This document shows, one piece after another, positions 2 through 58,486 of a DNA stretch of 64,000 nt. Location: the sequence record LR756502.1; one strand, written 5' to 3'. Below the pieces are notes generated by a model. That model was not told the DNA's origin. It did not search any database and saw nothing but the letters and a program-made list of their open reading frames with translations. The translations under genes and the position numbers were made by a program. Position 1 is the stretch's first letter. Every line of letters begins with the position of its first letter.

Positions 2-259
2 AAGAAAGGAACCGAACCATATATTGAATGGGTGGTCGCGAATCATCAACAGACCACAAAGGGTAATATTAGTTTTAGAAAACTTGGATCTCTCTATACA
101 AATGTATTTCTATCTAATATAATTATACCTGAGGATGAATTTAATAAAGTTTATGATATTGAGAATAGATTAAAACAATACTTCGATTCTGTTACAATAA
201 GATATTCTCATAATAGATCTTGTATCTATATTAATCTCTGTAATCAAAAGGACATATAA
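2..259 (+). CDS. hypothetical protein, 5'-truncated by window edge
   Basis: Frame is open from base 2 (KKGTEPYIEWVVANH...); stop abuts ATG 259. Confidence 0.6.
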   Translation, partial: KKGTEPYIEWVVANHQQTTKGNISFRKLGSLYTNVFLSNIIIPEDEFNKVYDIENRLKQYFDSVTIRYSHNRSCIYINLCNQKDI

Positions 260-552
260 TGAAATACTTAAATACATATAAATTATTTGAGAGTATCTCC
301 AAATATCCTGATGGGTTTGGTCGGTATTTAGATAACGATGATATACAAGATTCTCTTCAATATGATATAGGTGACATGGTTTGGGTTAGAGATTGGAGTG
401 ATGTGCCATGTCAGGTTATGGATATAAAGGTTGGTGTGGATGTGTCTGGTAGTCCACACAATGAAATATTAGTATACTTTTACTATGTTAGAAATTCAGA
501 GACAGAAGAAATAGAAAGGTTTAGATCATTTAAATTAAGTGAAATAGAATGA
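259..552 (+). CDS. N-tagged hypothetical protein (SH3-like YDIGDMVWV segment)
   Basis: Starts MKYLNTYKLFES; ATGA overlap with next gene. Confidence 0.75.
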   Translation: MKYLNTYKLFESISKYPDGFGRYLDNDDIQDSLQYDIGDMVWVRDWSDVPCQVMDIKVGVDVSGSPHNEILVYFYYVRNSETEEIERFRSFKLSEIE

Positions 553-1091
553 AGTACTTAAAGACATACTCCTTATATAAAATACTTGAGAGCACTTTAA
601 CAGATGTTAATTTTCCAAATGCTGAGGAAAAAATAAAAGACATATTGTCATATTTGATTGATGATGAGTTTTCTATAGATGTTGACTCTTATGAATTGGG
701 TGAGTTCCAAAGGCTGCCATCCAGAATTTTATTAAACATACCAGAGTCTATAACTCAAAACATGGAATGGGATCCACTACCAATTCTAGTTATTATTATT
801 GAATATTTTGATAATCAAGTGGAAACACAAAGAACATTCACAATTGATGAAATTGACCAACACATAAAAGAGTTAATTAATCAAATGAGTGATGATTATA
901 CATTTTTTCAATATTGGAAGTCTTATTCAGAGAGTACTAATTTAAATTTAAAATTAATTGGTGATTATTCTAAATGGTGTTCAAATATTGATAAGGTGTC
1001 TGAAGGTGATGATTGTGAGTTAAACTACATAAGACTAGAATTTATAAAAAATACTAATCTAGTGTCAAAATCCACAAATTCCATCCAATAA
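549..1091 (+). CDS. N-tagged member of DLxDxGF paralog family
   Basis: MKYLKTYSLYKILES; IKDILSYLIDDEFSIDV; FTIDEIDQHIKELINQM. Confidence 0.75.
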   Translation: MKYLKTYSLYKILESTLTDVNFPNAEEKIKDILSYLIDDEFSIDVDSYELGEFQRLPSRILLNIPESITQNMEWDPLPILVIIIEYFDNQVETQRTFTIDEIDQHIKELINQMSDDYTFFQYWKSYSESTNLNLKLIGDYSKWCSNIDKVSEGDDCELNYIRLEFIKNTNLVSKSTNSIQ

Positions 1092-1620
1092 CAATAACTG
1101 AGTGTATTGTCTCTGGTATTGCCATTCCCGGAAAAAATTTTAATGCTATTAACGGACCAACAACCATAGCAACTGCAAATGTTGTATGTGTCTGCCATTC
1201 TTTATATTGTAGGTGCTTTCTATTAAGATGAGCAAATAAGAAAACTATTAGTGGGTAAGCGAAGAAGTAAAGATACGCAGTGACATTATGAATATCGTGT
1301 GTCATATCTACTACTCCGGTGATAAATAAAAATGTGGATGTTAGTATAAATCCTAACTTTAGAAAGTTTGTATATCTTTCATGTAAACGTGTGTGATGTT
1401 TTATAAAAAGCATTACATTTATAAGAATAGAGACTGATAATATAGCGACACAGCTATTCCATATCCATCCTAGTTTCTTATCAACTCCCCAGAATGAAAG
1501 TTGAATATCTGTAAGCTTAAACTCAGTAACATTATAGCATAGTATGAATACTCCAATGAAAAGAAATATTGAAATGATGGTCTGCCACCTTCTAAACTTT
1601 TTAATATCAGAAATATCCAT
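1054..1620 (-). CDS. multi-pass membrane protein (DUF998-like)
   Basis: Five to six hydrophobic helices, HNVTAYLYF segment; family name from recall only. Confidence 0.55.
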   Translation of the reverse strand: MDISDIKKFRRWQTIISIFLFIGVFILCYNVTEFKLTDIQLSFWGVDKKLGWIWNSCVAILSVSILINVMLFIKHHTRLHERYTNFLKLGFILTSTFLFITGVVDMTHDIHNVTAYLYFFAYPLIVFLFAHLNRKHLQYKEWQTHTTFAVAMVVGPLIALKFFPGMAIPETIHSVIVIGWNLWILTLD

Positions 1621-1694
1621 ATACCTTGTTATACTTAAATTTAGTATTTATGTTACATACAAATATACTGATTTTAATTTAAACAATAAAACAA

Positions 1695-1703
1695 TAATAT
1701 ATA
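1695..1703 (+). promoter_or_regulatory. putative late promoter TAATATATA (example of a recurrent element)
   Basis: Same 9-mer lies 4-25 nt upstream of many ATGs (11822, 16540, 18281, 19231, 22532, 24771, 43370, 44910). Confidence 0.6.
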
Positions 1704-1707
1704 GTAT

Positions 1708-2268
1708 ATGATAATTAAAAGGTATAATGAATTTGTATTTGAGAATAAATCACCATTACTAGTTCTGCAAGATAATATTGATCGAGAGTTGATAGATATA
1801 ATACAATCGATAATACCTAGTGGTAAAATATTAGAAATATCTTGTGGAAACGGAGCGGACTCTATTGAGTTGGATAGATTAGGATATGATGTAACTGCTA
1901 CAGATTCAAATAAAGATTATGTTGAAAAGGCTGGTGAGTTTGTTAGGAGTCTTCATCATGATACAAGAGATGAGTTTCCGTTTGATGATGAACAATTTGA
2001 CCTAGTCTATTCAAGATTAGGATTACATTACTTCACACAAGATGAGTTGGTGAGTATATTTGATGAGATATCAAGAATAACAAAAAGATACTTAGTATTT
2101 ACGGTTAAACTTGTAAATGATATTCAAACAGGTAAGGTTATTTTTGACCAGAAATTCTGGCAGGATCTAACAAGTAGAAACTTTGTAATAGTATCATCTA
2201 AGGTTAAAACTGGTATATTATATGATAATGAGTCTAAGTGGCTAGAAGTTGTGGCAAAAAAGAAATAA
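1708..2268 (+). CDS. class I SAM-dependent methyltransferase, N-tagged
   Basis: Motif I ILEISCGNG; DTRDEFPFDDEQFDLVYSRLGLHYF. Confidence 0.85.
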   Translation: MIIKRYNEFVFENKSPLLVLQDNIDRELIDIIQSIIPSGKILEISCGNGADSIELDRLGYDVTATDSNKDYVEKAGEFVRSLHHDTRDEFPFDDEQFDLVYSRLGLHYFTQDELVSIFDEISRITKRYLVFTVKLVNDIQTGKVIFDQKFWQDLTSRNFVIVSSKVKTGILYDNESKWLEVVAKKK

Positions 2269-2270
2269 CT

Positions 2271-3062
2271 ATGGTATCAATTAAAAGATTTGGTCAACTA
2301 AACGAAAATAATATGTGGTATAAAACTATACCAGAGATTCTGTCTTGGATTAAATCAAAGTCCGATAAGTACTTCGTATGGATTGATACGGAAACGACCG
2401 GGTTACCAAGTGATCCAAATGAGATACAACTCACCCAAGTATCTGCAATAGTAACCAAATATAACTTTGAATCTAATACATTCGATGAGGTTGATACATA
2501 TAATAAAAAGATAAAGCTAACTGATACCTCATTGAGAGATATTAATAACCCATCGTATAGGATTAAAAAAGTTCTATCATTTAATCATTATGGTGAGAAG
2601 GGTGTTAAATATAGTGACGAAAAGGAAACACTACAAGACTTCTTTATTTGGTTAGGTAAGTATAATAATCCGATGTTGGTTATACAGAATGCTAAGTTTG
2701 ATATGAGGTATTTGAATACAAGGAATCCAATTGTGAAGTTTGATAATGAGGTTATGGATACAAAGATGATAATACAACTGTATTACTTACCTTTACTACA
2801 AACCTTATCTAAATCTGATGAGGTGTATGCAGAACTTGTTAATAAAATAGGAACATCTGATAGAGATGGTGGTTTAATCTCATCTTCAATGAGTAAGGTT
2901 GGTCCGGCTCTTGGTATTAATATGTCTGGATATCATGATGCTCTAACAGATTGTAGAATAACTATTAAAATGTTTCAAAAGATTATTGATTTATTAAAGA
3001 AAAATGAGGATATTGATATTAGTAAATATCAATCTGATAGGATAAGGACAATTAGAGGATGA
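2271..3062 (+). CDS. DEDDh (DnaQ-like) 3'-5' exonuclease, N-tagged
   Basis: IDTETTG, QNAKFD, HDALTDC; start moved to ATG 2271 (MVSIKRFGQLNE) after the upstream stop. Confidence 0.85.
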   Translation: MVSIKRFGQLNENNMWYKTIPEILSWIKSKSDKYFVWIDTETTGLPSDPNEIQLTQVSAIVTKYNFESNTFDEVDTYNKKIKLTDTSLRDINNPSYRIKKVLSFNHYGEKGVKYSDEKETLQDFFIWLGKYNNPMLVIQNAKFDMRYLNTRNPIVKFDNEVMDTKMIIQLYYLPLLQTLSKSDEVYAELVNKIGTSDRDGGLISSSMSKVGPALGINMSGYHDALTDCRITIKMFQKIIDLLKKNEDIDISKYQSDRIRTIRG

Positions 3063-3619
3063 GATATCTAAAGCAATATATAATATTTGAGACACTTGAT
3101 GATAAAATCTCAACTTCCTTTATTAGTACTAAGGGTATAATAGAGGATATATATAACATATGTGATGATTTGAGAGATGATGGTCTAGATGCTCACATTT
3201 ACCCTGGTCCAAATGATAGTATAGGAATTAAAATGCTTGGTCTTGAGAGGAATGGAATGGGGGGTGGTCATGTTACTAAGATACAGGTCACATTTACTTC
3301 ACAGAATATGGATAGATTCGAGGATGGTTTTAAGGTATCAGAGATACAAGATACTTGTAATAGGTTATTGGTTTACCTAAATAGTGAGAATTTTATTTGT
3401 AGTGATGTTAGTTACATAACAAGTGCTAAATATCATGCTGCTAGAATTTCAATGAATAGGTCAACAATCACAGGAAGAGAGCAGTCCAAAAAATTTGATG
3501 ATTTTTTTAATCATTTCTTGAAACAAGACCAAAGAGCTACAAAGAAGGTCGATAGTATAAATTCGTTCGGTTCTTGTATGTATAGAGTATCTCTATCATT
3601 CGTACCTACCCTAAATTAG
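3059..3619 (+). CDS. N-tagged DLxDxGF paralog
   Basis: MRYLKQYIIFET; ICDDLRDDGLDAHI; FKVSEIQDTCNRLLVYL. Confidence 0.75.
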   Translation: MRYLKQYIIFETLDDKISTSFISTKGIIEDIYNICDDLRDDGLDAHIYPGPNDSIGIKMLGLERNGMGGGHVTKIQVTFTSQNMDRFEDGFKVSEIQDTCNRLLVYLNSENFICSDVSYITSAKYHAARISMNRSTITGREQSKKFDDFFNHFLKQDQRATKKVDSINSFGSCMYRVSLSFVPTLN

Positions 3620-4310: not shown

Positions 4311-5060
4311 ATGAAGTATCTAAAAACTAATGAGGGTTTATTTTCAAAGGATGAAATTCCTAAGAATCTTATTGATGATATTGAAAAGGAAATTGAAAAG
4401 AACTACTCAGTGACAGTTTCTGGTATTAAAACAGCTGATATAGTACACAGTGTAACTTTTAAAACAAAGACACCTATTGGTGATGTTGATTTGGTTCTAA
4501 ATCTTGAAAAGCCATATAATAAGGGCAAACTAAGGTCCGCTATAATTGGTAATAATATAATATTTGAATTTTTTCAGGATGGTAAAAGAAGATTTGATTG
4601 GAATTACGAATTAAAACAGTTAAGAGGTGACCAGCTATCTGTTGTTTTAGTTAATATAACTAAATCTATAGATCATATTGTGAATAGAGTTACTCGGGAT
4701 AGAGATAGGAAAACAGAACATGAATCCTTCTATAATATAATAAGTGTTGATGAGATTAAGGATTTATGTGGTGATCTATATGATCTTATTGGTGAATTTA
4801 CTGTTGAGAAAGCTGGTCGGGAATATTTGGTTAAGTTTAGTAATGTTACTGGTATAGTTGCAACAACTGTAAACAATAACGCCAGAAATATCACGAGTTC
4901 AATTAGACCAAATGATAGGATGCTTAAACTTTTAATTGAATTGAACTCTCTATATAAAAGACTTCTTAATGGGTATAAACTAACCATGCTTTTTTCAATT
5001 GTACCTAATAATTTTCCAGTCTCAAAATCTTTGGTTATTACTATATCTAAAGCTAAATAA
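4311..5060 (+). CDS. N-tagged hypothetical protein
   Basis: MKYLKTNEG; AAATATATA upstream. Confidence 0.7.
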   Translation: MKYLKTNEGLFSKDEIPKNLIDDIEKEIEKNYSVTVSGIKTADIVHSVTFKTKTPIGDVDLVLNLEKPYNKGKLRSAIIGNNIIFEFFQDGKRRFDWNYELKQLRGDQLSVVLVNITKSIDHIVNRVTRDRDRKTEHESFYNIISVDEIKDLCGDLYDLIGEFTVEKAGREYLVKFSNVTGIVATTVNNNARNITSSIRPNDRMLKLLIELNSLYKRLLNGYKLTMLFSIVPNNFPVSKSLVITISKAK

Positions 5061-6186: not shown

Positions 6187-6969
6187 TTATTTTTCAACTA
6201 GATATAATTCTATATTATCGTGGAATTGCCCCAACACCGATACAAAATTATACTTTATATCGAATCCATCTTCATTAATTTTCCTCCTTATTTCCTTAAG
6301 TATCAAACTAGTTGATGTCACCAATAACCTCGACAGTTCTATATTTGAGCAAAGTGATCTTATTACTTCTGTATTTTCACCACTACCATGGACTATTATT
6401 TTAGTCCCATTGGATAGTTTTGGTAGTAAGTTTAAAGGTACGTTTGCTTCTTTAAGCAGTGTGAATAGTCTATTACATCCTGATATTATCTTATTTCTAT
6501 AAATTATTTCTGGCTCATCAACTAATCCAATATCAATCATTATCATTGTTGATAAGCTTGATGTCCAAATTTTTGGCTTGTATTCACTTAGATGTGATAT
6601 GGCGTCAAATAGGTCAATGTAGAACTCTCTCAATAAATTTAAATCACCATCTATAAATTTGAAAAGGTTACCACTACCACTGGTCATCGGTGGTAGTCCA
6701 ATGTTCCTATATGACTCTATATTTACTGATTCATAATTATAACTACCACTATCTATTTTTATAACCTTTGACTTTATCGTATATTGACCAATAGAATTAA
6801 TATTTTTATCTATTTGTGAGGATGTATCTCCTAGTTTATTTCGGTAGTAATCATATATCACAACTTCATACCCACTATCGATAACAGATGCCATTGTATC
6901 CATTATCATTGTGTTTATATCATCAACATTAGTTGATTCAAATATAATATAATCTTTGAGATGTTTCAC
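6187..6969 (-). CDS. N-tagged DLxDxGF-like paralog (GTG start)
   Basis: MKHLKDYIIFES; TAATATATA 4 nt upstream; IMDTMASVIDSGYEVVI. Confidence 0.75.
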   Translation of the reverse strand: MKHLKDYIIFESTNVDDINTMIMDTMASVIDSGYEVVIYDYYRNKLGDTSSQIDKNINSIGQYTIKSKVIKIDSGSYNYESVNIESYRNIGLPPMTSGSGNLFKFIDGDLNLLREFYIDLFDAISHLSEYKPKIWTSSLSTMIMIDIGLVDEPEIIYRNKIISGCNRLFTLLKEANVPLNLLPKLSNGTKIIVHGSGENTEVIRSLCSNIELSRLLVTSTSLILKEIRRKINEDGFDIKYNFVSVLGQFHDNIELYLVEK

Positions 6970-8610: not shown

Positions 8611-8793
8611 TTACTTTGGTATTCTGAACTTTAGAAGTGGTTTGCCGTTTATTGTGATGTCACCCTTTTCATTTTTACCAATCTTCTTAACAAGAATTTT
8701 CTTATTCTTAAATCGACCACCAAGGATGGTATCTCCAACTTTTATTGGGACTTTGATCATTTCAAATAAAGCGAATGGTTTTATAAACTTCAT
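8611..8793 (-). CDS. small basic N-tagged protein
   Basis: MKFIKPFALFEM; TAATATATA upstream. Confidence 0.7.
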   Translation of the reverse strand: MKFIKPFALFEMIKVPIKVGDTILGGRFKNKKILVKKIGKNEKGDITINGKPLLKFRIPK

Positions 8794-8807
8794 TAGTTAT
8801 ATATTAA

Positions 8808-11835: not shown

Positions 11836-12219
11836 ATGAAACATTTAGAATCATATAAGATATTTGAGTCAATTGATGAATTAGAGCATTACAATCCAAG
11901 TAAATCTAGTCAATTTAGGGCGGAGATAAAAGATCTTCTAGCCAATATAATTGATGATGGGTTTGATGTTAATGTAATATGTGTTGGAAACGATGGATAT
12001 TTCTCCATAAAGAAACCACTAAATCCTAATTTTGAGATGTTTAACATAAGTGATGTTAGGGAAGATGTTGTTAGACTAATTGATTTTATGTCAGATAGAT
12101 ATGATTTTCATATACAAGTAGACTCTAATAAATTAATCGATTTATCGTTTTTTTTGAGTGAATTTGAGGTAGGAAGAATCGTATCAATCGTAACTTTACA
12201 CCTGTGTAAAAAATATTAG
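11836..12219 (+). CDS. N-tagged DLxDxGF paralog
   Basis: MKHLESYKIFES; IKDLLANIIDDGFDV; FNISDVREDVVRLIDFM. Confidence 0.8.
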   Translation: MKHLESYKIFESIDELEHYNPSKSSQFRAEIKDLLANIIDDGFDVNVICVGNDGYFSIKKPLNPNFEMFNISDVREDVVRLIDFMSDRYDFHIQVDSNKLIDLSFFLSEFEVGRIVSIVTLHLCKKY

Positions 12220-13405: not shown

Positions 13406-13434
13406 AAAAACCTCTCTAATCGAGAGGTTTTTTT
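13406..13434. terminator. bidirectional intrinsic terminator
   Basis: AAAAACCTCTC-TAATC-GAGAGGTTTTT. Confidence 0.8.
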
Positions 13435-13450
13435 ATTTTTAAGTATTTCA

Positions 13451-13846
13451 TTAGAATCTATGGAATTTAATATCTATTATACACTTATCAGTATCTCGAT
13501 GGTAGTGCATTGACTTATAAACTATCCAAGACGATCCAATATTACCAATATTACCAATTGTTCTTGAAAAGAATCCATGCTTAACACATCTAATACCATA
13601 TACAGATTCTAATTGTTTAATTTTCTCTGAAATTTCCTGATCATAGAATGATTCTAATTCCTTAGGACTTAATCTCTCAGGTATTTTAATACTTAGTTGA
13701 ACAGTATCTTCTTCAAATTCTGTTGTTACTTCAAAGTCATCATATGATACTTTAATATCATCGAAGACGTCCATTATTTTAGTTTGAGTGTCTTGTTTCC
13801 TATTCTTAGGATAATTAAATGATTCGAAAGTTTTAACGTGTCTCAT
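13451..13846 (-). CDS. N-tagged hypothetical protein
   Basis: MRHVKTFESF; TAATATATA upstream. Confidence 0.75.
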   Translation of the reverse strand: MRHVKTFESFNYPKNRKQDTQTKIMDVFDDIKVSYDDFEVTTEFEEDTVQLSIKIPERLSPKELESFYDQEISEKIKQLESVYGIRCVKHGFFSRTIGNIGNIGSSWIVYKSMHYHRDTDKCIIDIKFHRF

Positions 13847-15542: not shown

Positions 15543-15980
15543 TTAATAACGATGAGCAAATTCTCTTGGTGGAACAAACTCGATTGATATATCGTCAATT
15601 GATTCAGTTGGGAGGTTATTTACTATACCAATATCTCTAACTGGTGTTTCAACTCCAGTAAAATCCACACTATACCAAGTGGATGCCTCATACCCCTTCA
15701 AATGATAGTATATTGATTTTATCCACATCTTATCATCAAGTTGAGCAATTAATTCATTTACCGAATCCTTAATATCATTGATATTAAATCCTAGTTTTGA
15801 TGATCTACCATACTCCATTCCTGGATTCAATATTCGTATATTTAAATTGAAGGAGATGTTGCTAAAAATAACATCAAACCCATTATCTAAAATATCTGAT
15901 AAGGCATCCTTACATAGTGGCCCGAGTTCGTATTCATCGCCAACTTCAACGAAGTCTTCAAATATTTTTAGGTATTTCAT
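15543..15980 (-). CDS. N-tagged DLxDxGF paralog
   Basis: MKYLKIFEDF; CKDALSDILDNGFDV; FNINDIKDSVNELIAQL. Confidence 0.8.
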   Translation of the reverse strand: MKYLKIFEDFVEVGDEYELGPLCKDALSDILDNGFDVIFSNISFNLNIRILNPGMEYGRSSKLGFNINDIKDSVNELIAQLDDKMWIKSIYYHLKGYEASTWYSVDFTGVETPVRDIGIVNNLPTESIDDISIEFVPPREFAHRY

Positions 15981-17260: not shown

Positions 17261-17800
17261 TTACCTGAAACGGTAAGACCAAGGTTGATCACGTTCATTT
17301 GGCACTACCTCACCAATTATATCATCCGACCCAACTAGCTTATAAACCTTTTTTATTTCCTTTAATACTTGTTCAGCATTCATTTTCTTAGGTTCATATT
17401 GCATAGCCTGGTCAGCTAAATACTTTCTATTCTTAATATTAAGATATCCTATACTCTTACCAACTCGCCTCTTATATACTTCAAGTGTAGGCCATTTTGT
17501 TTTAATCTTCTTAAGTGAATTTATCTTAGACATTATTACCTTAGATTCGACATCAGTAATATCGGTTTTATTAAAATGTATATTTTCTAGAGTGTCAATT
17601 AAAACATCCAAATTAGCATAAATGTCTAATAATTGTGGAAGTACTTGTTCTTTTACTTTTCTTGGATCCAAAAATTGAGTTACTGTAAATGCAATAACGG
17701 TGATTGGTATTGATAGTATTGTTTTAAGTATTTTACCGATAAACTCTTCGTTTATGGACTCACTTGCTGAGTAGGATTCGAATTTTTTAAGATGTTTCAT
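17261..17800 (-). CDS. N-tagged hypothetical protein
   Basis: MKHLKKFESY...INEE followed by a hydrophobic helix. Confidence 0.75.
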   Translation of the reverse strand: MKHLKKFESYSASESINEEFIGKILKTILSIPITVIAFTVTQFLDPRKVKEQVLPQLLDIYANLDVLIDTLENIHFNKTDITDVESKVIMSKINSLKKIKTKWPTLEVYKRRVGKSIGYLNIKNRKYLADQAMQYEPKKMNAEQVLKEIKKVYKLVGSDDIIGEVVPNERDQPWSYRFR

Positions 17801-17817
17801 TTTAATATATATTAAAA
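17800..17817. promoter_or_regulatory. palindromic bidirectional TAATATATA element
   Basis: TTTTAATATATATTAAAA is an 18-bp palindrome filling the 17-bp gap between divergent ATGs. Confidence 0.6.
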
Positions 17818-18276
17818 ATGAGACATATTAAATCATATAAAATATTTGAATCATCATCACGAAATTCATTTCCAACAGATCCAGAAAGATCTCAAATATG
17901 GAGTGATATAGAGGATATACTTACTCCGGTTAGTGACGATGGTGTCTTATGTACTAAAATCCAGAATTTCAGCCCAACAGATATATTGTCTCTTTCCTCA
18001 ATTCTAATAAAGAAAGATTGGAGTGTTGTTAAGGATAGAGATATGAGACATTTTGGAGTAAGTTATATTAAGGATGAGTTAAATCATCTTTGTAGTAGAT
18101 TTCCTGATATTATAAAAAAGATACATATATTTAGAAGTTTCGGTAAAGGTCCAACTACTTATACTCCGGAGGAATTTATAATAGAATCACCAGTTGGTAA
18201 TACCTTTCTTGTTGCTATAACTCTTAAAATTAGAAAGGATGGTGCTGCAGAAAATTCGGGGATTGACTTATCATAA
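17818..18276 (+). CDS. N-tagged DLxDxGF paralog
   Basis: MRHIKSYKIFES; IEDILTPVSDDGV. Confidence 0.75.
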   Translation: MRHIKSYKIFESSSRNSFPTDPERSQIWSDIEDILTPVSDDGVLCTKIQNFSPTDILSLSSILIKKDWSVVKDRDMRHFGVSYIKDELNHLCSRFPDIIKKIHIFRSFGKGPTTYTPEEFIIESPVGNTFLVAITLKIRKDGAAENSGIDLS

Positions 18277-24749: not shown

Positions 24750-24788
24750 ATTAATTATATATTAAAAACTTAATATATAATTAATATG
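24747..24788. repeat. perfect 19-bp inverted repeat containing both divergent start codons and two TAATATATA elements
   Basis: CATATTAATTATATATTAA-AAAC-TTAATATATAATTAATATG. Confidence 0.85.
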
Positions 24789-25487
24789 AAACATTTGAGT
24801 AAATATAATGAGTTTTCTATCAATGAGGGCAAGATATCACAAGCTGTCTTAAGTGGACTATTATCAATAACTGGGACTCTTAGTAAATTGTCAAAAAAGA
24901 TAACTGGTAAATATATACCAATTAAATTCAAAGATAAGAAAAAAGAGAGAGAAGTAAATAGAGACATTATTAAGCTTTTAGACTATACTCTTTTTGACAT
25001 GATGAAATACTACTTTAATAAAAAATATAAACAAGAGGCTGATAAAACTAGCTTTACTGAGTTAATTAAAAAGAGAAGTGGTGTCGATATGTATGATTTA
25101 ATTTCTAGGTTAGAATCAAATATGAAAATAGAGAACATTGAACTATCTACTGATAGTGATATTAGGAAAAAACAGGAGGATCTATATAATGTTGGAATTG
25201 AGACAATTAAGAAATATAAATCTATATTTAAGAAAATAGATGATAGTATTAAAGAGACTCAGTATTTACTTCAAGAACTAACTATTATAATGAGTGGGTT
25301 GGATCCAAGGATTAACAGGACTGCTGGTGAGACTTTAGATAATCTTCATAGTGGTTTAGATAGATTAGATAGGTTAACAGAACCAAAAGATATGAATGAT
25401 ATCCTTGACAAGGCTTCAAAATATGGAATCGAATCTCTTACTGATCAAGAGAAGGATGATTTGGATAAGCACTCAAAGTCAATATAA
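24786..25487 (+). CDS. N-tagged protein with C-terminal DUF6576-like helix pair
   Basis: MKHLSKYNEFSINE; NDILDKASKYGIESLTDQEKDDLDKHS. Confidence 0.75.
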   Translation: MKHLSKYNEFSINEGKISQAVLSGLLSITGTLSKLSKKITGKYIPIKFKDKKKEREVNRDIIKLLDYTLFDMMKYYFNKKYKQEADKTSFTELIKKRSGVDMYDLISRLESNMKIENIELSTDSDIRKKQEDLYNVGIETIKKYKSIFKKIDDSIKETQYLLQELTIIMSGLDPRINRTAGETLDNLHSGLDRLDRLTEPKDMNDILDKASKYGIESLTDQEKDDLDKHSKSI

Positions 25488-32084: not shown

Positions 32085-32560
32085 GTTACTGTATAATTTT
32101 CGTCGCTTTTTCTATATATTAAAATTTTAATCTGACTTCCAAATCGTCCATTATCTCTAACTTCAATTTTTTCTTTACACATAAATAGATTATAATCCTC
32201 CAATCTACTGGATAAAAGGCCTATACACCCCTTATAGATGTTTGTGTCTGTTAATTCTACTGTTATTTTATTTACAAATTCTATATCATCTATTTTAATT
32301 ACTCTAGAATGCATTTCTGGTCTTGATATATTTACTGATAAATATGGTATAAGATCAAACTCAAAACTCCCAGGCATCAAAAGGTCAGTGATGTTCTGTT
32401 TAGTAACTTTTTTTCTGTCAATTGAAAATTTCTTTTTAAAATCAACAGATATTTTCCAACCCTCATCTTCCAGGTCATAGAAACATTCTTTTATCTCTTC
32501 TTCTGTAATACCCATTTGAGTATTCTCTTCAAGATCTTCAAAATATTTTAGATATCTCAT
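32078..32560 (-). CDS. N-tagged DLxDxGF paralog
   Basis: MRYLKYFEDLEE; IKECFYDLEDEGWKISV. Confidence 0.75.
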   Translation of the reverse strand: MRYLKYFEDLEENTQMGITEEEIKECFYDLEDEGWKISVDFKKKFSIDRKKVTKQNITDLLMPGSFEFDLIPYLSVNISRPEMHSRVIKIDDIEFVNKITVELTDTNIYKGCIGLLSSRLEDYNLFMCKEKIEVRDNGRFGSQIKILIYRKSDENYTVTC

Positions 32561-34695: not shown

Positions 34696-36024
34696 ATGAG
34701 AATTACCGATTTCAAAAAGTTTGAAGCAATATCACCATCTCAGTTCAGACCATACATGAATGTGTGGACTGAGGATCCATTATTGAGAGATAGGTATAAA
34801 GATATTTTCGAAACATATAAGAAAAAGTTTAGTGGTGATAAGAATGCTTATAGAATATACTTACCCTTGGTTGAGGAAATTAAAAAGTCTGAAACTGAAA
34901 TTGAAATTACTGGTTTTTTAGATAAGGCTGGTTATGATATTATTGATTATATTGCCGGTCAAGCAAAATTTAGAGGAGCTAGAAATCCTAAAAGAATAGG
35001 TCAGGTAATAACTGGTCTTGAGAGAAATGCTACACCGGAAGAGAAGTTAGCTCTTAAGGACTTGATGAAAAAGTTCATTGAGGATCCAAATAGAAAGCAA
35101 GGAGCAGCTTCAAAATACTTGGTTTGTATATCAAGACATCCTTATGATATTGCTGGTGCTGATACTAATAGAAAGTGGGAAAATTGCATGACATTGGGTA
35201 CTGAGAATGGAAATCATCACTATCTTATACATGATGTTAAAGAGGGATCATTAGTTGGATACTTAATAGAGAAGGATGATAAGAATATTAAAGACCCAAT
35301 TGCTAATTGTGCGATTAAACCATATTTAAATGTTGATGATGAGTCTGATGTTATTTTAGTAAGAGATCCAAAAACATACCCACAACCATATCCAGATTTT
35401 GAAAGAACTGTTACAAATTGGTTGGATGAGGTTAATGGTGGTAAGCAAGGTATTTATTGTTTGAATTCAAAATTATATAATGATAATAGACTTAATAATA
35501 AGATAGTTACTGTTAGGGATATGAATCCAGAAATAATAAAAAAGATTGCTAAAGTTTATGGAATTAAGCTTAGAAACTTAATAATAAATGATGATATGAG
35601 TATCGATGTAAAGGGTGATGTTGATTTATCGGATAGGGTACTGACTAAATTTCCATTGGTGTTTAATCGAGTATTTGGTAATTTTAGAGCCACTGATAAT
35701 AATTTAACAACATTGGAAGGATCTCCTTGTATTGTTGATGGTGACTTTTTGGTTTATAATAATAAGTTAGAATCTTTGAAAGGTGGTCCTACTAAGGTTG
35801 GTGGTGAGTATTCAATATCCACTAATAATTTAAAGTCTTTGGATCATTGCCCTACTGAAGTAGGTTCTCATTTTGATATGTCATTTAATAAAAATTTATC
35901 TCACATTAGAAGAGCTGATGTTACTTGTCAGATTGGTGATAAATTTGTAAACAGAGGAGCGGATGACACCGACTCATATACCTATGAAGGAATGAAATAC
36001 CTTCGTAATTTCAAAAATTTCTAG
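34696..36024 (+). CDS. N-tagged protein with C-terminal leucine-rich solenoid repeats
   Basis: Repeats NNLTTLEGSP/NKLESLKGGP/NNLKSLDHCP with ~22-aa period; ends MKYLRNFKNF. Confidence 0.75.
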   Translation: MRITDFKKFEAISPSQFRPYMNVWTEDPLLRDRYKDIFETYKKKFSGDKNAYRIYLPLVEEIKKSETEIEITGFLDKAGYDIIDYIAGQAKFRGARNPKRIGQVITGLERNATPEEKLALKDLMKKFIEDPNRKQGAASKYLVCISRHPYDIAGADTNRKWENCMTLGTENGNHHYLIHDVKEGSLVGYLIEKDDKNIKDPIANCAIKPYLNVDDESDVILVRDPKTYPQPYPDFERTVTNWLDEVNGGKQGIYCLNSKLYNDNRLNNKIVTVRDMNPEIIKKIAKVYGIKLRNLIINDDMSIDVKGDVDLSDRVLTKFPLVFNRVFGNFRATDNNLTTLEGSPCIVDGDFLVYNNKLESLKGGPTKVGGEYSISTNNLKSLDHCPTEVGSHFDMSFNKNLSHIRRADVTCQIGDKFVNRGADDTDSYTYEGMKYLRNFKNF

Positions 36025-36491: not shown

Positions 36492-36524
36492 TCTTTTAAT
36501 ATATACAAAAAAGATTATTAATAA

Positions 36525-43347: not shown

Positions 43348-43386
43348 TTTTCATAGGACAGATTTCTTTTAATATATAATCACAAT

Positions 43387-46262: not shown

Positions 46263-46919
46263 ATGAAGTATTTAAGATTATATGAAGAGTTTAATCAAGA
46301 CTTAATTGATAAATTGGTAGAGGATACAAGAAATACTGGTGAAAAAAACGGTGTTAAAATTGTATTTGAGGATACAATGACAATTCCTTACGCTATAAGC
46401 GGAATGCCTGTTAGTGGATATTTTATCGATTATGGTAATCCCACACTAGCGGTTGCTATGGGTAAGCCTACCGAAGAGTGGGTTATGATACTAGCTCATG
46501 AATCCTCTCATATGGATCAGTGGATTGAGAAGTCACCATACTGGACAAACTCTTTTATAAACGGAAGGGAAGCGGTTGATTATATTGACGAATGGATATC
46601 TGGTAAAGATTTTAGTGATGAAGAATTAGATAAGATAACAAAAGCTTCAATAGGTGTTGAGTTGGATTGTGAGAAAAGAACCATTGAGAAGGCAAAACAA
46701 TACAAATTACCAATAGATGTAAAAGAGGAAACTCAGAAAGCGAATTCATATATTCTTTTTTATACTTTGGTTAAGAGTACACGAAAGTGGAATGTTGCTG
46801 GTAAGGCTCCTTATCAAGTAAAAGAAGTTTGGTCACAAATGCCTACTACATTTGATATGGATTACTATGTAGTTCCGGAAAATCTAAAAGAGTTATACTT
46901 AAAATACTGCTTCAAATAA
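46263..46919 (+). CDS. zincin-like metallopeptidase, N-tagged
   Basis: MKYLRLYEEF; LAHESSH (HExxH); downstream ELDCE. Confidence 0.7.
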   Translation: MKYLRLYEEFNQDLIDKLVEDTRNTGEKNGVKIVFEDTMTIPYAISGMPVSGYFIDYGNPTLAVAMGKPTEEWVMILAHESSHMDQWIEKSPYWTNSFINGREAVDYIDEWISGKDFSDEELDKITKASIGVELDCEKRTIEKAKQYKLPIDVKEETQKANSYILFYTLVKSTRKWNVAGKAPYQVKEVWSQMPTTFDMDYYVVPENLKELYLKYCFK

Positions 46920-46925: not shown

Positions 46926-47339
46926 ATGAAATATATTAACACATATAAGTTGTTTGAGAATAGTGAATCATCCGATGAGACATATAAAATAGTATCCGAG
47001 CAACTGTTTTATGAATTAGATGATAAATTTAGATTTGGACCAGGTGTGTTCTTTCCATTGAAAGTTCGTTTAGAGTATAGAAATGATAGTTATGATTTGA
47101 CTATTGCTTTAGCTGGTGGTTGGATTAGAAGAATGTCCGATGATGATATTAAGTGGTTGCGTGATAAGGTTTATGATATAAATAAAGAATATGAATCCAA
47201 TGGAAACTTCTATGCTGCTTTTATGGGTGATGGTGGTGGAAATGGTAGAATCGTATTTGAAATGATGAATGAAGATTTTCCGAGGAGTTCTATGGATTAT
47301 ATGAATCATCCTATTGGTCCTTATCCTGATCGAGGATAA
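46926..47339 (+). CDS. N-tagged hypothetical protein
   Basis: MKYINTYKLFENSES. Confidence 0.7.
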   Translation: MKYINTYKLFENSESSDETYKIVSEQLFYELDDKFRFGPGVFFPLKVRLEYRNDSYDLTIALAGGWIRRMSDDDIKWLRDKVYDINKEYESNGNFYAAFMGDGGGNGRIVFEMMNEDFPRSSMDYMNHPIGPYPDRG

Positions 47340-56132: not shown

Positions 56133-56642
56133 TTATTTTCCAAAACTCTTAAAAGTTCTTGTTCTTCTATAACTTTTTGATTCAGATGTTAATTCTTCTT
56201 CTCCTCTTCTCTGATATCTTTCCTCATCTTCTCTTTCACTGAAATCTTTTTCATCATCCAAAACAGGAGTCTCATTATCAAAATCTGGAGCCTCATCTGA
56301 TATATCATTACCACCTTCAGAACTTAAATATTCAACAACCTCATCAGCTGTTTTAAATTTCTTTCTATCAACGTGATACATTTCTGTTTCAGAGAAAAAG
56401 TTTATTACCTTTCCATTATACTCAACTGAATTATCAACTACTTCAGCTCCTAATTTGTCAGCTAACTCAGCTAACATTCTATTGCCTTTATATTGGTGAC
56501 CTTCCTCCTCGGAATAATCTGATTCATCAGATATTTCACCCTGAACTTCGTCTTTAACTTCGTCTTGAATTTCACCCTCTGGGAAATCAAAATCCTCGTT
56601 GATTTTTTTAATATATTGGTTGTATTTCTTAATAATTGCCAT
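56133..56642 (-). CDS. N-tagged acidic protein
   Basis: MAIIKKYNQYIKKINE; ends RTRTFKSFGK. Confidence 0.75.
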   Translation of the reverse strand: MAIIKKYNQYIKKINEDFDFPEGEIQDEVKDEVQGEISDESDYSEEEGHQYKGNRMLAELADKLGAEVVDNSVEYNGKVINFFSETEMYHVDRKKFKTADEVVEYLSSEGGNDISDEAPDFDNETPVLDDEKDFSEREDEERYQRRGEEELTSESKSYRRTRTFKSFGK

Positions 56643-56687
56643 GTTTAATACTTTCTTTTTGTATAGATATATATTAAAATTAAATAT

Positions 56688-57167
56688 CTATTTTTCTTTC
56701 AGTTCTTCACATATATAGTCTAAAAAGTTATCAAGTTCATATTCTATACCACCACAAAATTCAAAAACATCATATGTTGAATTTTTATAAACCTTTTCAA
56801 AGTCGGCTACTGTATCACCATTTGGATATACTATTATTTTCCCTTCTAATATTCCCTCTGATATTTCTCCATTCTCCCACTCAATTGCGGGGACATATAG
56901 TGTACCTATGTGATGGATCTCATCACCATAGTCTTCTGTTAATCTATATTCAAACTTGAAATATCCTGAGTCATCCTCAAATACTTGATCATTTTCTAAA
57001 TATTTAATCTTGTTATGTATCTCATCCTCTTTATGTGATGAGTGTGAGTCTAGAAATTCCTTCTCTAATGAGGTTAGAGAGTCAACTCCATATTTTGAAA
57101 TTTTATCCAAAATATCGTCTTGTCTTTCTTGGGATCCATATCCCTCATATCTCATTAGATGTTTCAT
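56688..57167 (-). CDS. N-tagged protein with DUF6576-like segment
   Basis: MKHLMRYEGY; DDILDKISKYGVDSLTSLEKEFLDSHS. Confidence 0.75.
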   Translation of the reverse strand: MKHLMRYEGYGSQERQDDILDKISKYGVDSLTSLEKEFLDSHSSHKEDEIHNKIKYLENDQVFEDDSGYFKFEYRLTEDYGDEIHHIGTLYVPAIEWENGEISEGILEGKIIVYPNGDTVADFEKVYKNSTYDVFEFCGGIEYELDNFLDYICEELKEK

Positions 57168-57169
57168 AT

Positions 57170-57535
57170 TTAACTATTTATAATTCCATTGGTTGTTCCA
57201 ATATATGGCCCAACATTTATCATCTTTTCCTTTATCGATTTATAGACTTCATTTTGATATCCACTGGTTTGGTATATACAGACATATGAATTGTTAATTT
57301 GGTCAATTTCAAAATCTTCGAATTCTATATCATTTAAAATGTTATTTATTTTTCTTTCCCTTTCATATGATTTTTTTGAATCAGTGTAATTATCAACAAA
57401 GCAGAATATCATACCACCACTACCATCTTTTGGATGTGATAAAACCTTTTGAAAGTCTAATCCAAAATAGAACTTCATTGTCACTCCACTATCTTTATCT
57501 ATATGCTCATCAACCAATACCATCGAATATATCAT
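57170..57535 (-). CDS. hypothetical protein (internal RERKINNIL motif)
   Basis: Coupled run. Confidence 0.65.
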   Translation of the reverse strand: MIYSMVLVDEHIDKDSGVTMKFYFGLDFQKVLSHPKDGSGGMIFCFVDNYTDSKKSYERERKINNILNDIEFEDFEIDQINNSYVCIYQTSGYQNEVYKSIKEKMINVGPYIGTTNGIINS

Positions 57536-57740
57536 CTATTTTTTTATCCCTAGACTCTGACTTATATAATTCTAGTTGTCTTTCATTAAAAAGTTCATCA
57601 TTCTCAAATCTGTATTTATAGTCAATAAATGCTGAATTTGACATTTTTAGTAATTTATAAGCACCTTTACCTATCTTATTATCTGCTAACCTAGCATCTA
57701 AGTATAGAATATAGTATGGGTATATCTTATCTAATTTCAT
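57510..57740 (-). CDS. C-tagged hypothetical protein
   Basis: Ends SRDKKIDDIFDGIG; start MKLDKIY inferred. Confidence 0.65.
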   Translation of the reverse strand: MKLDKIYPYYILYLDARLADNKIGKGAYKLLKMSNSAFIDYKYRFENDELFNERQLELYKSESRDKKIDDIFDGIG

Positions 57741-57766
57741 ATTATATATATTGATTATTAATATAT

Positions 57767-58486
57767 ATGAATATGAAAAAGATATCATTTATTTTAGAGG
57801 CTCAGAATAGAGTTCATGGTGGTGGTAATCCATTTTCCAATGGTCATAGGAGCAGAGCAAATAAAGATGGATTTTTAAAAAGTCACTTTATGTTAGATCT
57901 TGATGAGATCATCTATGACCAAGATAATAAGATAATAGCTCTTGTTGAAAAGAAATATAAAGCAGATTCTGTTAAATTAGGTAATATACTTAAACAACCA
58001 ACAATACAAAAAGGAGTTTTGTTACATCTATCCAATATTCTTAAATGTAAGCTATTTGTTAATATAACAAGCGAGGATAAATATTATAGGATAGATAGTT
58101 TGACTGATTATAAAGAGTTTAGTTCAGAATCATTTGCGGAATCTAGTTCAAAATATCTTAAATATAACTCAGATGATATGATATATGTTGAGTATAAAAA
58201 ATCAGGTCAAAATTTTGTAATCAAAGCTATTACTAGAAGATTGGCAGATAATATAGATATTAATGGATTACTATCCTTAATGTCACAGAAATTAAATGTT
58301 CCAATAATTAAAGTTGATGATAATAGTGATGTGATAAAGTTCTATAAATCAACTGGACCTGGTGGGGTTTTTGTTGGTAAAGTTGAGTCTATACAAGATC
58401 CAAGTAGTTTAGTTGATGATTCTAAAAGAAGACAGCTAGAGGACGATTGGGAATCAATTTATAGAAAATTAGGAATCTGGGACTAG
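57767..58486 (+). CDS. hypothetical protein, possible PD-(D/E)xK nuclease fold
   Basis: LDLDEII...IALVEKK; tag-like KKISFILEA; TAATATATA upstream. Confidence 0.5.
   Translation: MNMKKISFILEAQNRVHGGGNPFSNGHRSRANKDGFLKSHFMLDLDEIIYDQDNKIIALVEKKYKADSVKLGNILKQPTIQKGVLLHLSNILKCKLFVNITSEDKYYRIDSLTDYKEFSSESFAESSSKYLKYNSDDMIYVEYKKSGQNFVIKAITRRLADNIDINGLLSLMSQKLNVPIIKVDDNSDVIKFYKSTGPGGVFVGKVESIQDPSSLVDDSKRRQLEDDWESIYRKLGIWD

Follow-up and report, generated by a model that had tools for sequence, protein, structure and literature searches.

A Shared N-Terminal Tag Resembling the T4 Capsid-Targeting Sequence on Proteins of a Freshwater Megaphage

A Short Peptide Is Shared by the N-Termini of About One in Seven Megaphage Proteins

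About one in seven proteins of a 642-kb uncultured freshwater phage (Lac Pavin megaphage, LR756502.1, predicted Bacteroidetes host) begins with the same 10-13-residue peptide, which resembles the signal that loads proteins into the capsid of phage T4. If the peptide works the same way, this phage pre-packs over a hundred different proteins for injection. The stretch of DNA analysed here, referred to as the window, covers bases 62001-126000 of the record (64,000 nucleotides). A previous sequence-only reading of the window had listed about 30 unrelated proteins with such a tag, and this observation was confirmed. All 30 coordinates listed were ORF boundaries, although for minus-strand genes the coordinate given was the low (stop) end and the tag lies at the high end. 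A profile built from the tags scored 21 of the 30 at 10.8-20.8 bits over the whole tag, and these carry the strong form M-[KR]-[HY]-[LI]-K-x-[YF]-…-F-E. The other nine (1708, 2271, 4311, 8611, 22545, 29808, 34696, 51187, and 56133) carry weaker or variant forms, and one more weak tag was found at 29537-29806 (Table 1). Genome-wide, 127-136 of 995 ORFs carry the tag.

To determine whether the motif is more frequent than expected by chance, a condition that had been set beforehand, several controls were performed. Searched as a DNA pattern, MK[HY]LK gave 8 matches in the window against 0.14 expected from shuffles. With a threshold of 6 bits or more, 136 N-terminal hits were found in the genome against 10 internal hits, even though the internal search space was tenfold larger. 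No tag was detected in the 50 kb sampled from each of two AT-rich related phages, PTm1 (0 of 58 ORFs) and Lak-A2 (26% GC, 0 of 86 ORFs). The tag was found in 57 stretches of IMG/VR but gave only one hit in 596 Gb of cellular genomes.

Table 1: Tagged genes and associated elements in the window (coordinates are those of the window; bits are scores of the tag profile).
Position	Strand	Feature	Supporting data
259..552	+	Tagged gene, MKYLNTYKLFES (long flavour)	18.2 bits
549..1091	+	Tagged gene, MKYLKTYSLYKILES; DDGF-domain paralog	11.5 bits; DDGF profile hit
1708..2268	+	T4-like-flavour tag MIIKRYNEFVFEN on a class I methyltransferase	6.7 bits; Pfam Methyltransf_25 3.4e-14; pattern [YFW]xx[FY][ILV]xE; TAATATATA at 1695, 4 nt upstream
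2271..3062	+	Weak tag MVSIKRFGQLNEN on a DEDDh (RNase_T) exonuclease	Pfam RNase_T 7.4e-7; phrog_192
3059..3619	+	Tagged gene, MRYLKQYIIFET; DDGF paralog	13.4 bits; DDGF profile
4311..5060	+	Half tag MKYLKTNEGLF	5.7 bits, profile positions 1-6 only
6187..6969	-	Tagged gene (GTG start), KHLKDYIIFES	15.7 bits; TAATATATA 4 nt upstream
8611..8793	-	Small tagged gene, MKFIKPFALFEM	TAATATATA (-) at 8798-8806, 4 nt upstream
11836..12219	+	Tagged gene, MKHLESYKIFES; DDGF paralog	18.4 bits; in the AF2 model the tag is low-confidence coil and the domain starts at about residue 21
13419..13451	-	Decayed tag remnant MKYLKIKKPLD followed by a stop	
13451..13846	-	Tagged gene, MRHVKTFESF	15.9 bits; promoter 4 nt upstream
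15543..15980	-	Tagged gene, MKYLKIFEDF; DDGF paralog	15.2 bits
16553..16939	+	Tagged gene, MRFLRSFNES; DDGF paralog	11.3 bits; promoter 4 nt upstream
17261..17800	-	Tagged gene, MKHLKKFESY, followed by a hydrophobic helix	16.7 bits; TM-like window at residue 20
17803..17814	.	Two overlapping divergent TAATATATA elements serving 17800(-) and 17818(+)	
17818..18276	+	Tagged gene, MRHIKSYKIFES; DDGF paralog	19.4 bits
18294..18539	+	Tagged gene, MKHLKNYKSFNED	20.8 bits
18706..19218	-	Tagged gene, MKYLQTYESH	14.0 bits
19248..19748	+	Tagged gene, MKYIKLFEAF; DDGF paralog	14.9 bits
22545..23540	+	Weak tag (GTG), KKFSKIFENRDE	TAATATATA at 22532, 4 nt upstream
24786..25487	+	Tagged gene, MKHLSKYNEF; C-terminal DUF6576	17.6 bits; Pfam DUF6576 8e-8
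27294..27830	-	Tagged gene (GTG), KYLKKFNES	15.4 bits
27827..28426	-	Tagged Nudix-like protein, MKHLKLYEYF	14.6 bits; 238 orthologs, tag core kept in 23 aligned ones; AF2 pLDDT 87.9 with residues 1-7 disordered
29537..29806	-	Weak tag MKHLKKLTLEN (start at 29806, not the longest ORF start)	4.5 bits; translation
29808..32084	-	T4-like-flavour tag MLRKYGQFINEE on a 758-aa DHH-family protein	Pfam DHH 2.4e-5, below cut-off; pattern [YFW]xx[FY][ILV]xE; TAATATATA 28 nt upstream
32078..32560	-	Tagged gene, MRYLKYFEDL; DDGF paralog	10.9 bits
33990..34634	-	Tagged gene, MRNIKTYKQHNEE, followed by a Gly-rich hydrophobic helix	10.8 bits; TM-like window at residue 19
34696..36024	+	Very weak tag MRITDFKKFEAIS; the C-terminus ends in a tag-like remnant MKYLRNFKNF	
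36497..36505	+	TAATATATA, class B (19 nt before the 624-aa gene at 36525)	Same element as on tagged genes
43370..43378	+	TAATATATA 8 nt before the baseplate hub gene 43387-44901	phrog_430
46263..46919	+	Tagged gene, MKYLRLYEEF; body holds an HExxH-like HESSH string	16.4 bits; no Pfam or PHROG family
46926..47339	+	Tagged gene, MKYINTYKLFEN; DDGF paralog	16.6 bits
51187..52269	+	T4-like-flavour tag MDILRFDQFIRES	Pattern [YFW]xx[FY][ILV]xE; no Pfam or PHROG family hit
56133..56642	-	Weak tag MAIIKKYNQYIKKINED	3.1 bits; TAATATATA 25 nt upstream
56688..57167	-	Tagged gene, MKHLMRYEGY; DUF6576	12.0 bits; Pfam 1.3e-8

The Tag Is Selected as a Peptide and Precedes Diverse Bodies

To determine whether selection acts on the nucleotides or on the peptide, codon usage within the tag was examined. 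Synonymous codons vary freely (His CAC 34 / CAT 30, Leu TTA 49 / CTA 26, Lys5 AAA 45 / AAG 38), showing that selection acts on the peptide. The one exception is codon 2, where AAA makes up 86% of the Lys codons against 60% genome-wide. Conservation runs to residues 10-12 and acts on amino acids. The tag behaves as an add-on module, since 23 aligned orthologs of the Nudix-like protein keep M1, K5, E8, and F10 followed by a variable linker. In the AlphaFold2 (AF2) model of this protein, which is otherwise confident, the tag is unstructured with pLDDT below 50, and it is likewise modelled as a disordered appendage in a member of the DDGF family described below.

The enzyme bodies named in the sequence-only reading were compared with Pfam and PHROGs. 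The methyltransferase and the RNase_T (DEDDh) exonuclease were confirmed by Pfam, the DHH and Nudix matches fell below the Pfam cut-offs, and the HAD, zincin, and LRR assignments were not confirmed by Pfam or PHROGs. The description of the proteins as unrelated is only partly right. Ten window proteins, nine of them tagged, and 44 of the 127 tagged proteins genome-wide share one very divergent domain, here called DDGF, so that about a third of the tagged proteins form a single paralog family. The rest are BLASTP singletons (by BLASTP, 100 of the 127 bodies are singletons). No tagged protein among the 127 exceeds 367 aa (0 of 127 above 400 aa, against 95 of 868), few have membrane-like segments, and one copy of each totals only 2.4 MDa; these properties are cargo-like. 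The tagged proteins are acidic (median pI 5.1, 46% below 5).

Tagged Genes Share the Promoter of Structural Genes

The earlier claim that most tagged genes have a TAATATATA-type element, directly or through a coupled upstream gene, holds. At operon level, 48% of tagged genes sit behind an exact copy and 24% behind a one-mismatch copy. The element has a conserved A 5 nt downstream and drives the portal, the baseplate hub, and large genes that look like tail fibres. At operon level, 61 tagged genes sit behind TAATATATA and 4 behind the host-type TAnnTTTG, whereas the counts for untagged genes are 137 and 128 (odds ratio 14, p = 1.6e-11). Of the 55 tagged genes with a nearby TAATATATA, 47 have it 4-9 nt from the ATG, which implies leaderless transcripts, but 58 untagged genes use the same spacing and about 60% of tagged genes lie inside operons with no promoter of their own. 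That these genes are late is inferred from promoter sharing alone.

The Genome Encodes T4-Type Head Machinery and the Tag Resembles the T4 Signal

As the capsid-targeting reading calls for a gp21-like protease, the genome was searched for head genes. A predicted head maturation protease (phrog_207, 6e-28, with a sub-threshold Pfam Peptidase_S77 match) was found at record 225272-227371, next to a gp23-type capsid protein (3.7e-28) and a portal (phrog_213, 3.7e-59). A gp55-like late sigma (phrog_234, 1e-5) is also encoded. A tagged 157-aa gene sits directly upstream of the portal in 52 of 75 related loci.

To test the resemblance to T4, a tag model trained only on this phage was used to score 84 T4 ORFs. 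It ranked ipI, ipII, and ipIII 1st, 2nd, and 5th, each aligned at residue 2, an alignment that puts T4 residues 4 and 7, the ones that matter for targeting (PMC9026906), on the two conserved aromatic positions of the tag. The match is weak in bits (5.7, 2.3, and 1.2), and the profile does not find the T4 gp24, gp67, or gp68 propeptides. A second flavour of the tag has exactly the T4 architecture, aromatic-x-x-F-[ILV]-x-E. The pattern [YFW]xx[FY][ILV]xE at residues 4-10 occurs in 26 ORFs against 2.1 expected, and in 75 kb of T4 the same N-terminal pattern hits only ipII and ipIII. On the other hand, only about 37 of the 127 strong tags, plus the 26 of T4-like flavour, have I/L/V three residues before the Glu. 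The commonest flavours, "YNES" and "FExF", do not, although the sequence-only reading had described many tags as ending in I/L-F-E or I/L-N-E.

Interpretation of the Tag

The tag is most likely a capsid-targeting propeptide of the T4 kind, a reading to which we give a probability of about 0.5. We propose that this short and flexible peptide binds the prohead core, which may be the long C-terminal part of the gp21-like protease or a scaffold not yet identified, while heads assemble. Small soluble proteins made late in infection would thereby be enclosed in the capsid, the gp21-like protease would then cut after the conserved Glu, and the cargo would enter the next host with the DNA. The analysis shows that the tag exists, is specific to N-termini, is selected as a peptide, is disordered in models, is restricted to one clade of phages with a T4-type head module, matches the T4 internal-protein signal at the two aromatic positions that matter for targeting in T4, and is found on genes using the promoter class of virion genes. 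Binding to the core, cleavage by the protease, presence in virions, and injection into the host are all inferred. The interpretation of the sequence-only reading, a genome-wide packaging address loading a large enzyme cargo into the head, is partly supported, and the resemblance to the T4 capsid-targeting sequence survives testing. Several points do not fit neatly. T4 internal proteins are described as basic (PMC9026906), unlike the tagged proteins. Fused multi-domain members of the DDGF family keep near-complete internal tag copies without the Met, which a purely N-terminal address should have let decay. A cargo list of 13-19% of all genes would be without precedent. Finally, the stretches sampled from PTm1 and Lak-A2, whose capsid proteins are related, show no tag, so that it may not be needed for this head type.

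We cannot rule out the possibility that the tag is a docking peptide for some other common partner, such as a phage or host chaperone, a protease or unfoldase acting on a degron, a modifying enzyme, the membrane, or an intracellular compartment, and that it sorts or times a class of late phage proteins inside the infected cell without loading them into capsids. A disordered, portable N-terminal motif under peptide-level selection fits any linear-motif system, the internal copies in fused proteins suggest that the motif may work away from the N-terminus, an acidic cargo is not what one expects next to packed DNA, and both the very large number of tagged genes and the absence of the tag from the sampled stretches of related phages with related capsid proteins are compatible with this view. 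It remains doubtful, as no candidate partner was identified and as it explains neither the specific positional match to the T4 signal, nor the conserved tagged gene beside the portal, nor the strict size ceiling on tagged proteins.

The tag could also be the legacy of one hugely expanded paralog family, that is, the N-terminal segment of the DDGF domain unit, spread by duplication and by recombination grafting new bodies behind a resident 5' end, and kept for a reason intrinsic to each protein (folding, oligomerisation, or a domain cap) with no common sorting role. In addition to the 44 tagged members, 12 untagged proteins share the domain, the family has 2974 representative clusters of which 147 of the top 150 carry the tag, tag plus domain repeats as a unit inside fused proteins, tagged genes form tandem arrays, and decayed tag remnants exist. 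We consider this unlikely, since two thirds of the tagged bodies are unrelated to DDGF and include SET, methyltransferase, exonuclease, and Nudix-like folds on which the tag is a disordered add-on, since codons have diverged while residues are kept, pointing to continuing selection on the peptide in every lineage and not to recent grafting, and since AF2 does not pack the tag into the DDGF domain. A by-product of gene expression in an AT-rich host lacking Shine-Dalgarno sites, through codon bias at starts or an enhancer for leaderless mRNAs made from TAATATATA, would be in line with the AAA bias at codon 2 and with the 4-9 nt spacing. This very improbable explanation is already largely refuted by the free synonymous variation at every other position, the length of the conserved segment, the tagged genes without a promoter of their own, the untagged genes with the same spacing, the absence of the tag from the stretches sampled from the AT-rich controls, and the shuffles.

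Comparison with Known Systems

[quoted passage not shown] T-even internal proteins are diverse and share only this sequence (PMC3012670). As in T4, a 10-19-residue N-terminal peptide is shared by otherwise unrelated small proteins, with aromatic residues three apart after a Lys-rich start and then a Glu, in a phage with gp20, gp21, and gp23-type head genes and a gp55-like late sigma, and the genes have the promoter class of the head genes. The differences are the scale (127-170 genes against three to five in T4), the extra M-K-[HY]-L prefix of the dominant flavour and its frequent lack of I/L three residues before the Glu, the acidic cargo, and the presence in that cargo of many enzyme folds and one giant paralog family; packaging and cleavage are inferred here by analogy.

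The propeptides of ejection and inner-body proteins in phiKZ-like giant phages (SPN3US, 201phi2-1; PMC5694885) also belong to giant phages with a gp21-related protease that cuts after Glu and with paralog families of head-internal proteins. Some of that cargo has a membrane helix right after the propeptide, as in SPN3US gp47, and four tagged proteins here look like that. However, those propeptides are mostly over 100 residues long, are cut at (A/S/G)-x-E, and are not one shared short motif, and of about 50 head proteins in SPN3US eight are processed.

The T4 late promoter TATAAATA, used with gp55, is like TAATATATA a -10-only, AT-rich element in front of virion genes, and TAATATATA has the conserved A 5 nt downstream. 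The sequence differs, and half of the TAATATATA copies sit 4-9 nt from the ATG, which implies leaderless mRNAs.

Occurrence of the Tag in the Megaphage Genome

To determine whether the N-terminal tag is a property of the genome as a whole, we built a profile from 114 N-termini selected by a regular expression and searched it against 995 greedily chosen ORFs of LR756502.1, an unannotated record of 642,428 bp of which the window is bases 62001-126000. The phage is one of the Lac Pavin megaphages of the Mahaphage clade and has a predicted Bacteroidetes host (PMC7162821, PMC9875498). The profile gave 136 hits of at least 6 bits within the first 20 residues, and only 10 such hits in the roughly tenfold larger interior, several of which are miscalled starts or fused duplicates. 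At 2 bits or more the counts were 173 N-terminal against 38 internal, so that about 17% of ORFs carry some form of the tag. The observation of the sequence-only reading holds. All 30 coordinates that it listed are ORF boundaries, although for minus-strand genes the coordinate is the low end and the tag lies at the other end. In the window, 21 genes score 10.8-20.8 bits, about nine of the listed ones are weaker variants, and one further tagged gene was found. The DNA pattern for MK[HY]LK occurs 8 times in the window against 0.14 expected from dinucleotide-preserving shuffles.

The strong tags, which number 127 and cover residues 1-13, fall into three flavours: a long flavour, M-K-[HY]-L-K-x-Y-x-[IL]-F-E, with 37 members, a short flavour, …[YF]-N-E-S, with 44, and a FExF flavour, …[YF]-E-x-F, with 31. 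Tags of this genome include MKHLKTYKIFES and MIIKRYNEFVFEN. A Glu at positions 8-12 is near-universal. I, L or V three residues before that Glu occurs in the long flavour (about 37 of 127) and in a T4-like flavour (26 ORFs, see below), but not in the YNES or FExF flavours.

Within the tag, synonymous codons vary freely (His CAC 34 / CAT 30, Tyr TAT 26 / TAC 24, Leu TTA 49 / CTA 26, Lys5 AAA 45 / AAG 38, Glu GAA / GAG) and only codon 2 leans towards AAA. Upstream of the ATG nothing position-specific was found beyond an A-rich stretch that untagged genes share. The idea of a nucleotide-level cassette or RNA element was rejected on these two grounds. Structural genes are untagged, and the 50-kb stretches sampled from two AT-rich related phages with Bacteroidetes hosts hold no tag: Tenacibaculum phage PTm1 gave 0 of 58 ORFs at 31% GC and Prevotella phage Lak-A2 gave 0 of 86 at 26% GC. 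The AT-rich initiation bias that had been named beforehand as grounds for discarding the observation was therefore not found.

Properties of the Tagged Proteins

The claim that the tagged proteins are unrelated is only partly right. After removal of the first 14 residues, 100 of 127 tagged proteins have no BLASTP relative in the genome. However, a profile of the region behind the tag shows that 44 of the 127, plus 12 untagged proteins, share one very divergent domain of about 120 residues, whose hallmark is a helix …D-I-L-L-E-L-x-D-D-G-F (the DDGF domain). Ten window proteins belong to this family, nine of them tagged. The family has 2974 representative clusters in a library of 1.84 billion proteins, and 147 of the top 150 carry the tag. 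Some family members are two or three tag-plus-DDGF units fused in one ORF (representatives P0121, P0122, P0131 and P0133 of the library clusters, 17 other representatives, and one ORF of the record), with internal tags that are nearly complete but often lack the Met; these may be real polyproteins, recent fusions or gene-calling artefacts. A Foldseek search of the AlphaFold2 model of a DDGF member against the PDB returned nothing below E = 0.5, the model being only of medium confidence (pLDDT 65).

The other tagged bodies are diverse. A class I methyltransferase, an RNase_T (DEDDh) exonuclease, a SET domain and DUF6576 were confirmed by Pfam, while DHH, Nudix and Toprim matches fell below the Pfam cut-offs. 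The HAD, zincin and LRR bodies proposed by the sequence-only reading were not supported, since neither Pfam nor PHROGs returned a family for them.

The tag looks like a portable linear motif. The Nudix-like protein has 238 homologs at E ≤ 0.001, and in the 23 that we aligned M1, K5, E8 and F10 are invariant and are followed by a variable, indel-rich linker and then by the conserved domain. With that alignment AlphaFold2 gives a confident model (pLDDT 87.9, pTM 0.79) in which residues 1-7 are below pLDDT 50 and unstructured. The DDGF member behaves the same way. Among the strong set, tagged proteins are small, none exceeding 367 aa (0 of 127 above 400 aa, against 95 of 868 untagged, p = 2e-6). 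They are soluble, with only 4 of 125 having any membrane-like window against 100 of 805 untagged, and acidic, with a median pI of 5.1 against 6.0. A Sec, Tat or lipoprotein signal peptide was rejected on composition, as the tag is charged and aromatic with no hydrophobic core. Nor does the tag fit the long propeptides of phiKZ-like phages, which exceed 100 residues and are cut at (S/A/G)-x-E, since it is 10-13 residues long and the folded domain starts by about residue 20.

Distribution

The exact pattern MK[HY]LKxYKIFE occurs in 57 stretches of IMG/VR, all at 24-42% GC and nearly all at 24-32%, and most of them have further tagged genes nearby. The same pattern occurs once in 596 Gb of bacterial and archaeal genomes, in an 18-kb contig of a "Rickettsiaceae" MAG (JAIOYD010000005.1) that carries two tagged genes side by side and is probably a mis-binned phage contig. 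The portal of this phage has 264 relatives in IMG/VR, of which the best 80 are 71-90% identical. Four tag-bearing contigs recur in that list, and 138 of 1457 ORFs around those portals are tagged. Sister megaphages carry the tag at lower density: LR745206 7 of 105, LR756500 4 of 87 and LR756504 2 of 151. The tag therefore marks a widespread uncultured freshwater clade.

A tblastn search for cultured-phage homologs with two tagged proteins gave no match other than the sister megaphage LR745206.1. The nearest cultured capsid relatives are Tenacibaculum PTm1, PTm5 and pT24, Sphingomonas PAU and Chryseobacterium MA9V, and the first 50 kb of PTm1, the only part of these genomes scanned, holds no tag.

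Head Genes and Comparison with Phage T4

Outside the window the genome encodes a T4-type head module comprising a portal, a head maturation protease and a gp23-type capsid protein, together with a gp55-like late sigma. No separate gp22-like scaffold was identified. The late sigma was found only with PHROGs, as phmmer and jackhmmer with T4 gp55 gave no significant hit. The ortholog of a 157-aa tagged gene lies directly upstream of the portal in 52 of 75 related loci.

When 50 kb of T4 was searched with the profile trained on the megaphage, ipI ranked 1st (5.7 bits), ipII 2nd (2.3 bits) and ipIII 5th (1.2 bits) of 84 ORFs. The scores are low, but each is aligned from residue 2 to profile positions 5-11 or 5-13. 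That alignment places T4 residues 4 and 7 on the two conserved aromatic positions of the tag. Amber-suppression work identified these two residues as the ones that matter for targeting, and residues 8 and 10 as the ones for processing (PMC9026906). A second tag flavour has exactly the T4 architecture, [YFW]-x-x-[FY]-[ILV]-x-E, starting at residues 4-10; it occurs in 26 ORFs against 2.1 expected, and 23 of them lie outside the strong set. In 75 kb of T4 this N-terminal pattern hits only ipII and ipIII. The profile did not find the gp24, gp67, gp68 or gp22 N-termini of T4, so the resemblance is to the internal-protein signal only.

Promoters

The element TAATATATA is promoter-like and occurs 211 times, with 164 copies in the 5% of the genome that is intergenic. 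An A is conserved 5 nt after the element whatever the distance to the ATG, and we read that A as the transcription start. The distances fall into two sharp classes. In class A (4-10 nt), which serves most tagged genes and also the baseplate hub, the A of the ATG would be the start, which implies a leaderless mRNA. In class B (18-28 nt), which serves the portal, a 624-aa gene of the window and large genes that look like tail fibres, the mRNA would have a short A-rich leader.

A second promoter class matches the Bacteroidetes sigma-A consensus (TTTG…TAnnTTTG, mostly TATATTTG). Judged by their N-terminal sequences only, the genes behind it look like DnaK, an NAD-dependent ligase, an aminoacyl-tRNA synthetase and NAMPT-like genes. 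This supports the predicted host phylum and suggests an early class of genes transcribed by the host polymerase. Operons led by an exact TAATATATA hold 61 tagged and 137 untagged genes, whereas those led by TAnnTTTG hold 4 tagged and 128 untagged genes (odds ratio 14, p = 1.6e-11). Another 31 tagged genes follow a one-mismatch TAATATATA. In all, TAATATATA precedes 72% of tagged operons and the host-type element 3%. With a gp55-like sigma present, the simplest reading is that TAATATATA is a T4-style late promoter and that tagged genes are late genes expressed with the head genes, an inference that rests on promoter class alone. These results give a working transcription map for an uncultured megaphage, with host-type promoters on metabolic and translation genes and a gp55-type TAATATATA promoter on virion and tagged genes.

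Interpretation

The capsid-targeting reading explains the form of the tag, the positional match to T4, the T4-type head genes, the late-type promoters, the tagged neighbour of the portal, the size ceiling and the restriction to phages. A few tags followed by a membrane-like helix are not a problem for it, since the SPN3US ejection protein gp47 has the same layout (PMC5694885). Capacity is not the obstacle either, as one copy of each strong-tag protein totals only 2.4 MDa and SPN3US packs more than 40 MDa of ejection proteins (PMC7411985). On the other hand, this reading does not comfortably explain the acidity of the cargo, the absence of I/L at the third residue before the Glu in the commonest flavours, the sheer number of tagged genes, or the near-complete internal tag copies in fused multi-domain proteins, although the latter could serve as cleavage sites in polyproteins. 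We put its probability at about 0.5. A docking motif for another partner is less likely but cannot be ruled out, a legacy of one protein family with no common sorting role is less likely still, and an artefact of expression is very improbable.

The interpretation of the sequence-only reading, a genome-wide packaging address, is thus partly supported. The analysis itself establishes the tag, its concentration at N-termini, the free variation of its codons, its resemblance to the T4 internal-protein signal, the head genes and the promoter association, whereas removal of the tag, the presence of tagged proteins inside virions, their delivery into the host and the ability of the peptide alone to direct a foreign protein into heads are inferred by analogy with T4.

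A more far-reaching possibility, which we hold only tentatively, is that a clade of freshwater megaphages uses one short N-terminal address to load well over a hundred different small proteins into each capsid. The cargo would include SET and class I methyltransferases, Nudix-like and DHH-family proteins, an exonuclease and a 3000-cluster family of unknown fold, and the virion would deliver a ready-made proteome with the DNA, made late in the previous cycle from leaderless mRNAs. If the tag is a capsid address, it would raise the known number of distinct capsid-cargo proteins from a handful in T4, and about fifty head proteins in phiKZ-like phages, to more than a hundred, and would help explain what much of the "dark" gene content of megaphages is for. 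It would give a one-line rule by which injected proteins, which are likely anti-defence and takeover factors, could be read directly from metagenomes, and would offer a second portable packaging tag. If it is not, a phage-specific linear motif on 13-19% of a proteome would still point to an unknown sorting or regulatory system. We found no mention of the tag in the paper that described these genomes (PMC7162821), and a literature search for the peptide strings returned only unrelated hits. On present evidence the tag is best regarded as a greatly expanded version of the T4 capsid-targeting principle.

Additional Features of the Genome

Location of features in the window and in the LR756502.1 record
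Coordinates	Strand	Feature	Observation
window 1708		methyltransferase	T4-like flavour tag
window 29808-32084		DHH-family protein	T4-like flavour tag
window 51187		ORF	T4-like flavour tag
window 29537-29806		additional tagged gene	weak tag, beyond the 30 listed
window 11822-11830	+	TAATATATA
window 16540-16548	+	TAATATATA
window 36497-36505	+	TAATATATA
window 36525		624-aa gene	served by class B TAATATATA
window 43370-43378	+	TAATATATA
window 1660	-	host-type promoter	TTTG…TAnnTTTG class
window 46197	-	host-type promoter	TTTG…TAnnTTTG class
record, upstream of 358289, 408566, 494282, 133119		host-type promoters	TTTG…TAnnTTTG class
window 13419-13451	-	decayed tag	MKYLKIKKPLD followed by a stop, in a stretch without a convincing gene
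window 35992-36024	+	decayed tag	MKYLRNFKNF, at the very C-terminus of the 442-aa ORF 34696-36024
window 33990-34634	-	tag-plus-helix subfamily	M[KR]NIKxYxDFxNEE[VI]xW, then a Gly/Ala-rich hydrophobic helix
record 56658, 544849, 580926		tag-plus-helix subfamily	as the preceding row
window 8611-8793	-	60-aa ORF	tag, and TAATATATA 4 nt upstream
window 8642-8830	+	longer ORF	probably spurious
record 22663-23577	-	fused tag-plus-DDGF units
record 217128-217493	+	gp55-like late sigma, 121 aa	phrog_234 (late sigma transcription factor), E = 1e-5
record 221232		tagged gene
record 222007		tagged gene
record 222545-224260		portal	phrog_213, 3.7e-59
record 225272-227371		head maturation protease, 699 aa	phrog_207, 6e-28; Pfam Peptidase_S77 (gp21 family), 4.6e-4, below cut-off
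record 227452-229167		capsid protein	Pfam Gp23, 3.7e-28
record 229253-229942	+	protein with NFACT-R RNA-binding domain	Pfam 1.7e-14
record 229975		peptidase-like paralog, in the head module	phrog_4191 (peptidase)
record 243765, 300298, 412580		paralogs of 229975	by BLASTP
record 315773, 542908		small proteins of 165 and 171 aa	similar only to the N-terminal part of the capsid protein

The two decayed tags look like remnants of lost tagged genes. The tag-plus-helix subfamily recalls the propeptide-plus-membrane-helix layout of SPN3US gp47. The two small proteins resembling the propeptide-like N-terminal part of the capsid protein may be scaffold-like or decoy copies of the capsid N-terminal domain. 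Three of the four paralogs at 229975, 243765, 300298 and 412580, of which only the one in the head module was compared with PHROGs, sit behind host-type promoters. The NFACT-R protein, encoded between the capsid gene and the peptidase-like gene, is an odd neighbour for a head module. Finally, the overlapping pair of ORFs on opposite strands of the window shows that the tag and promoter together can correct gene calls.
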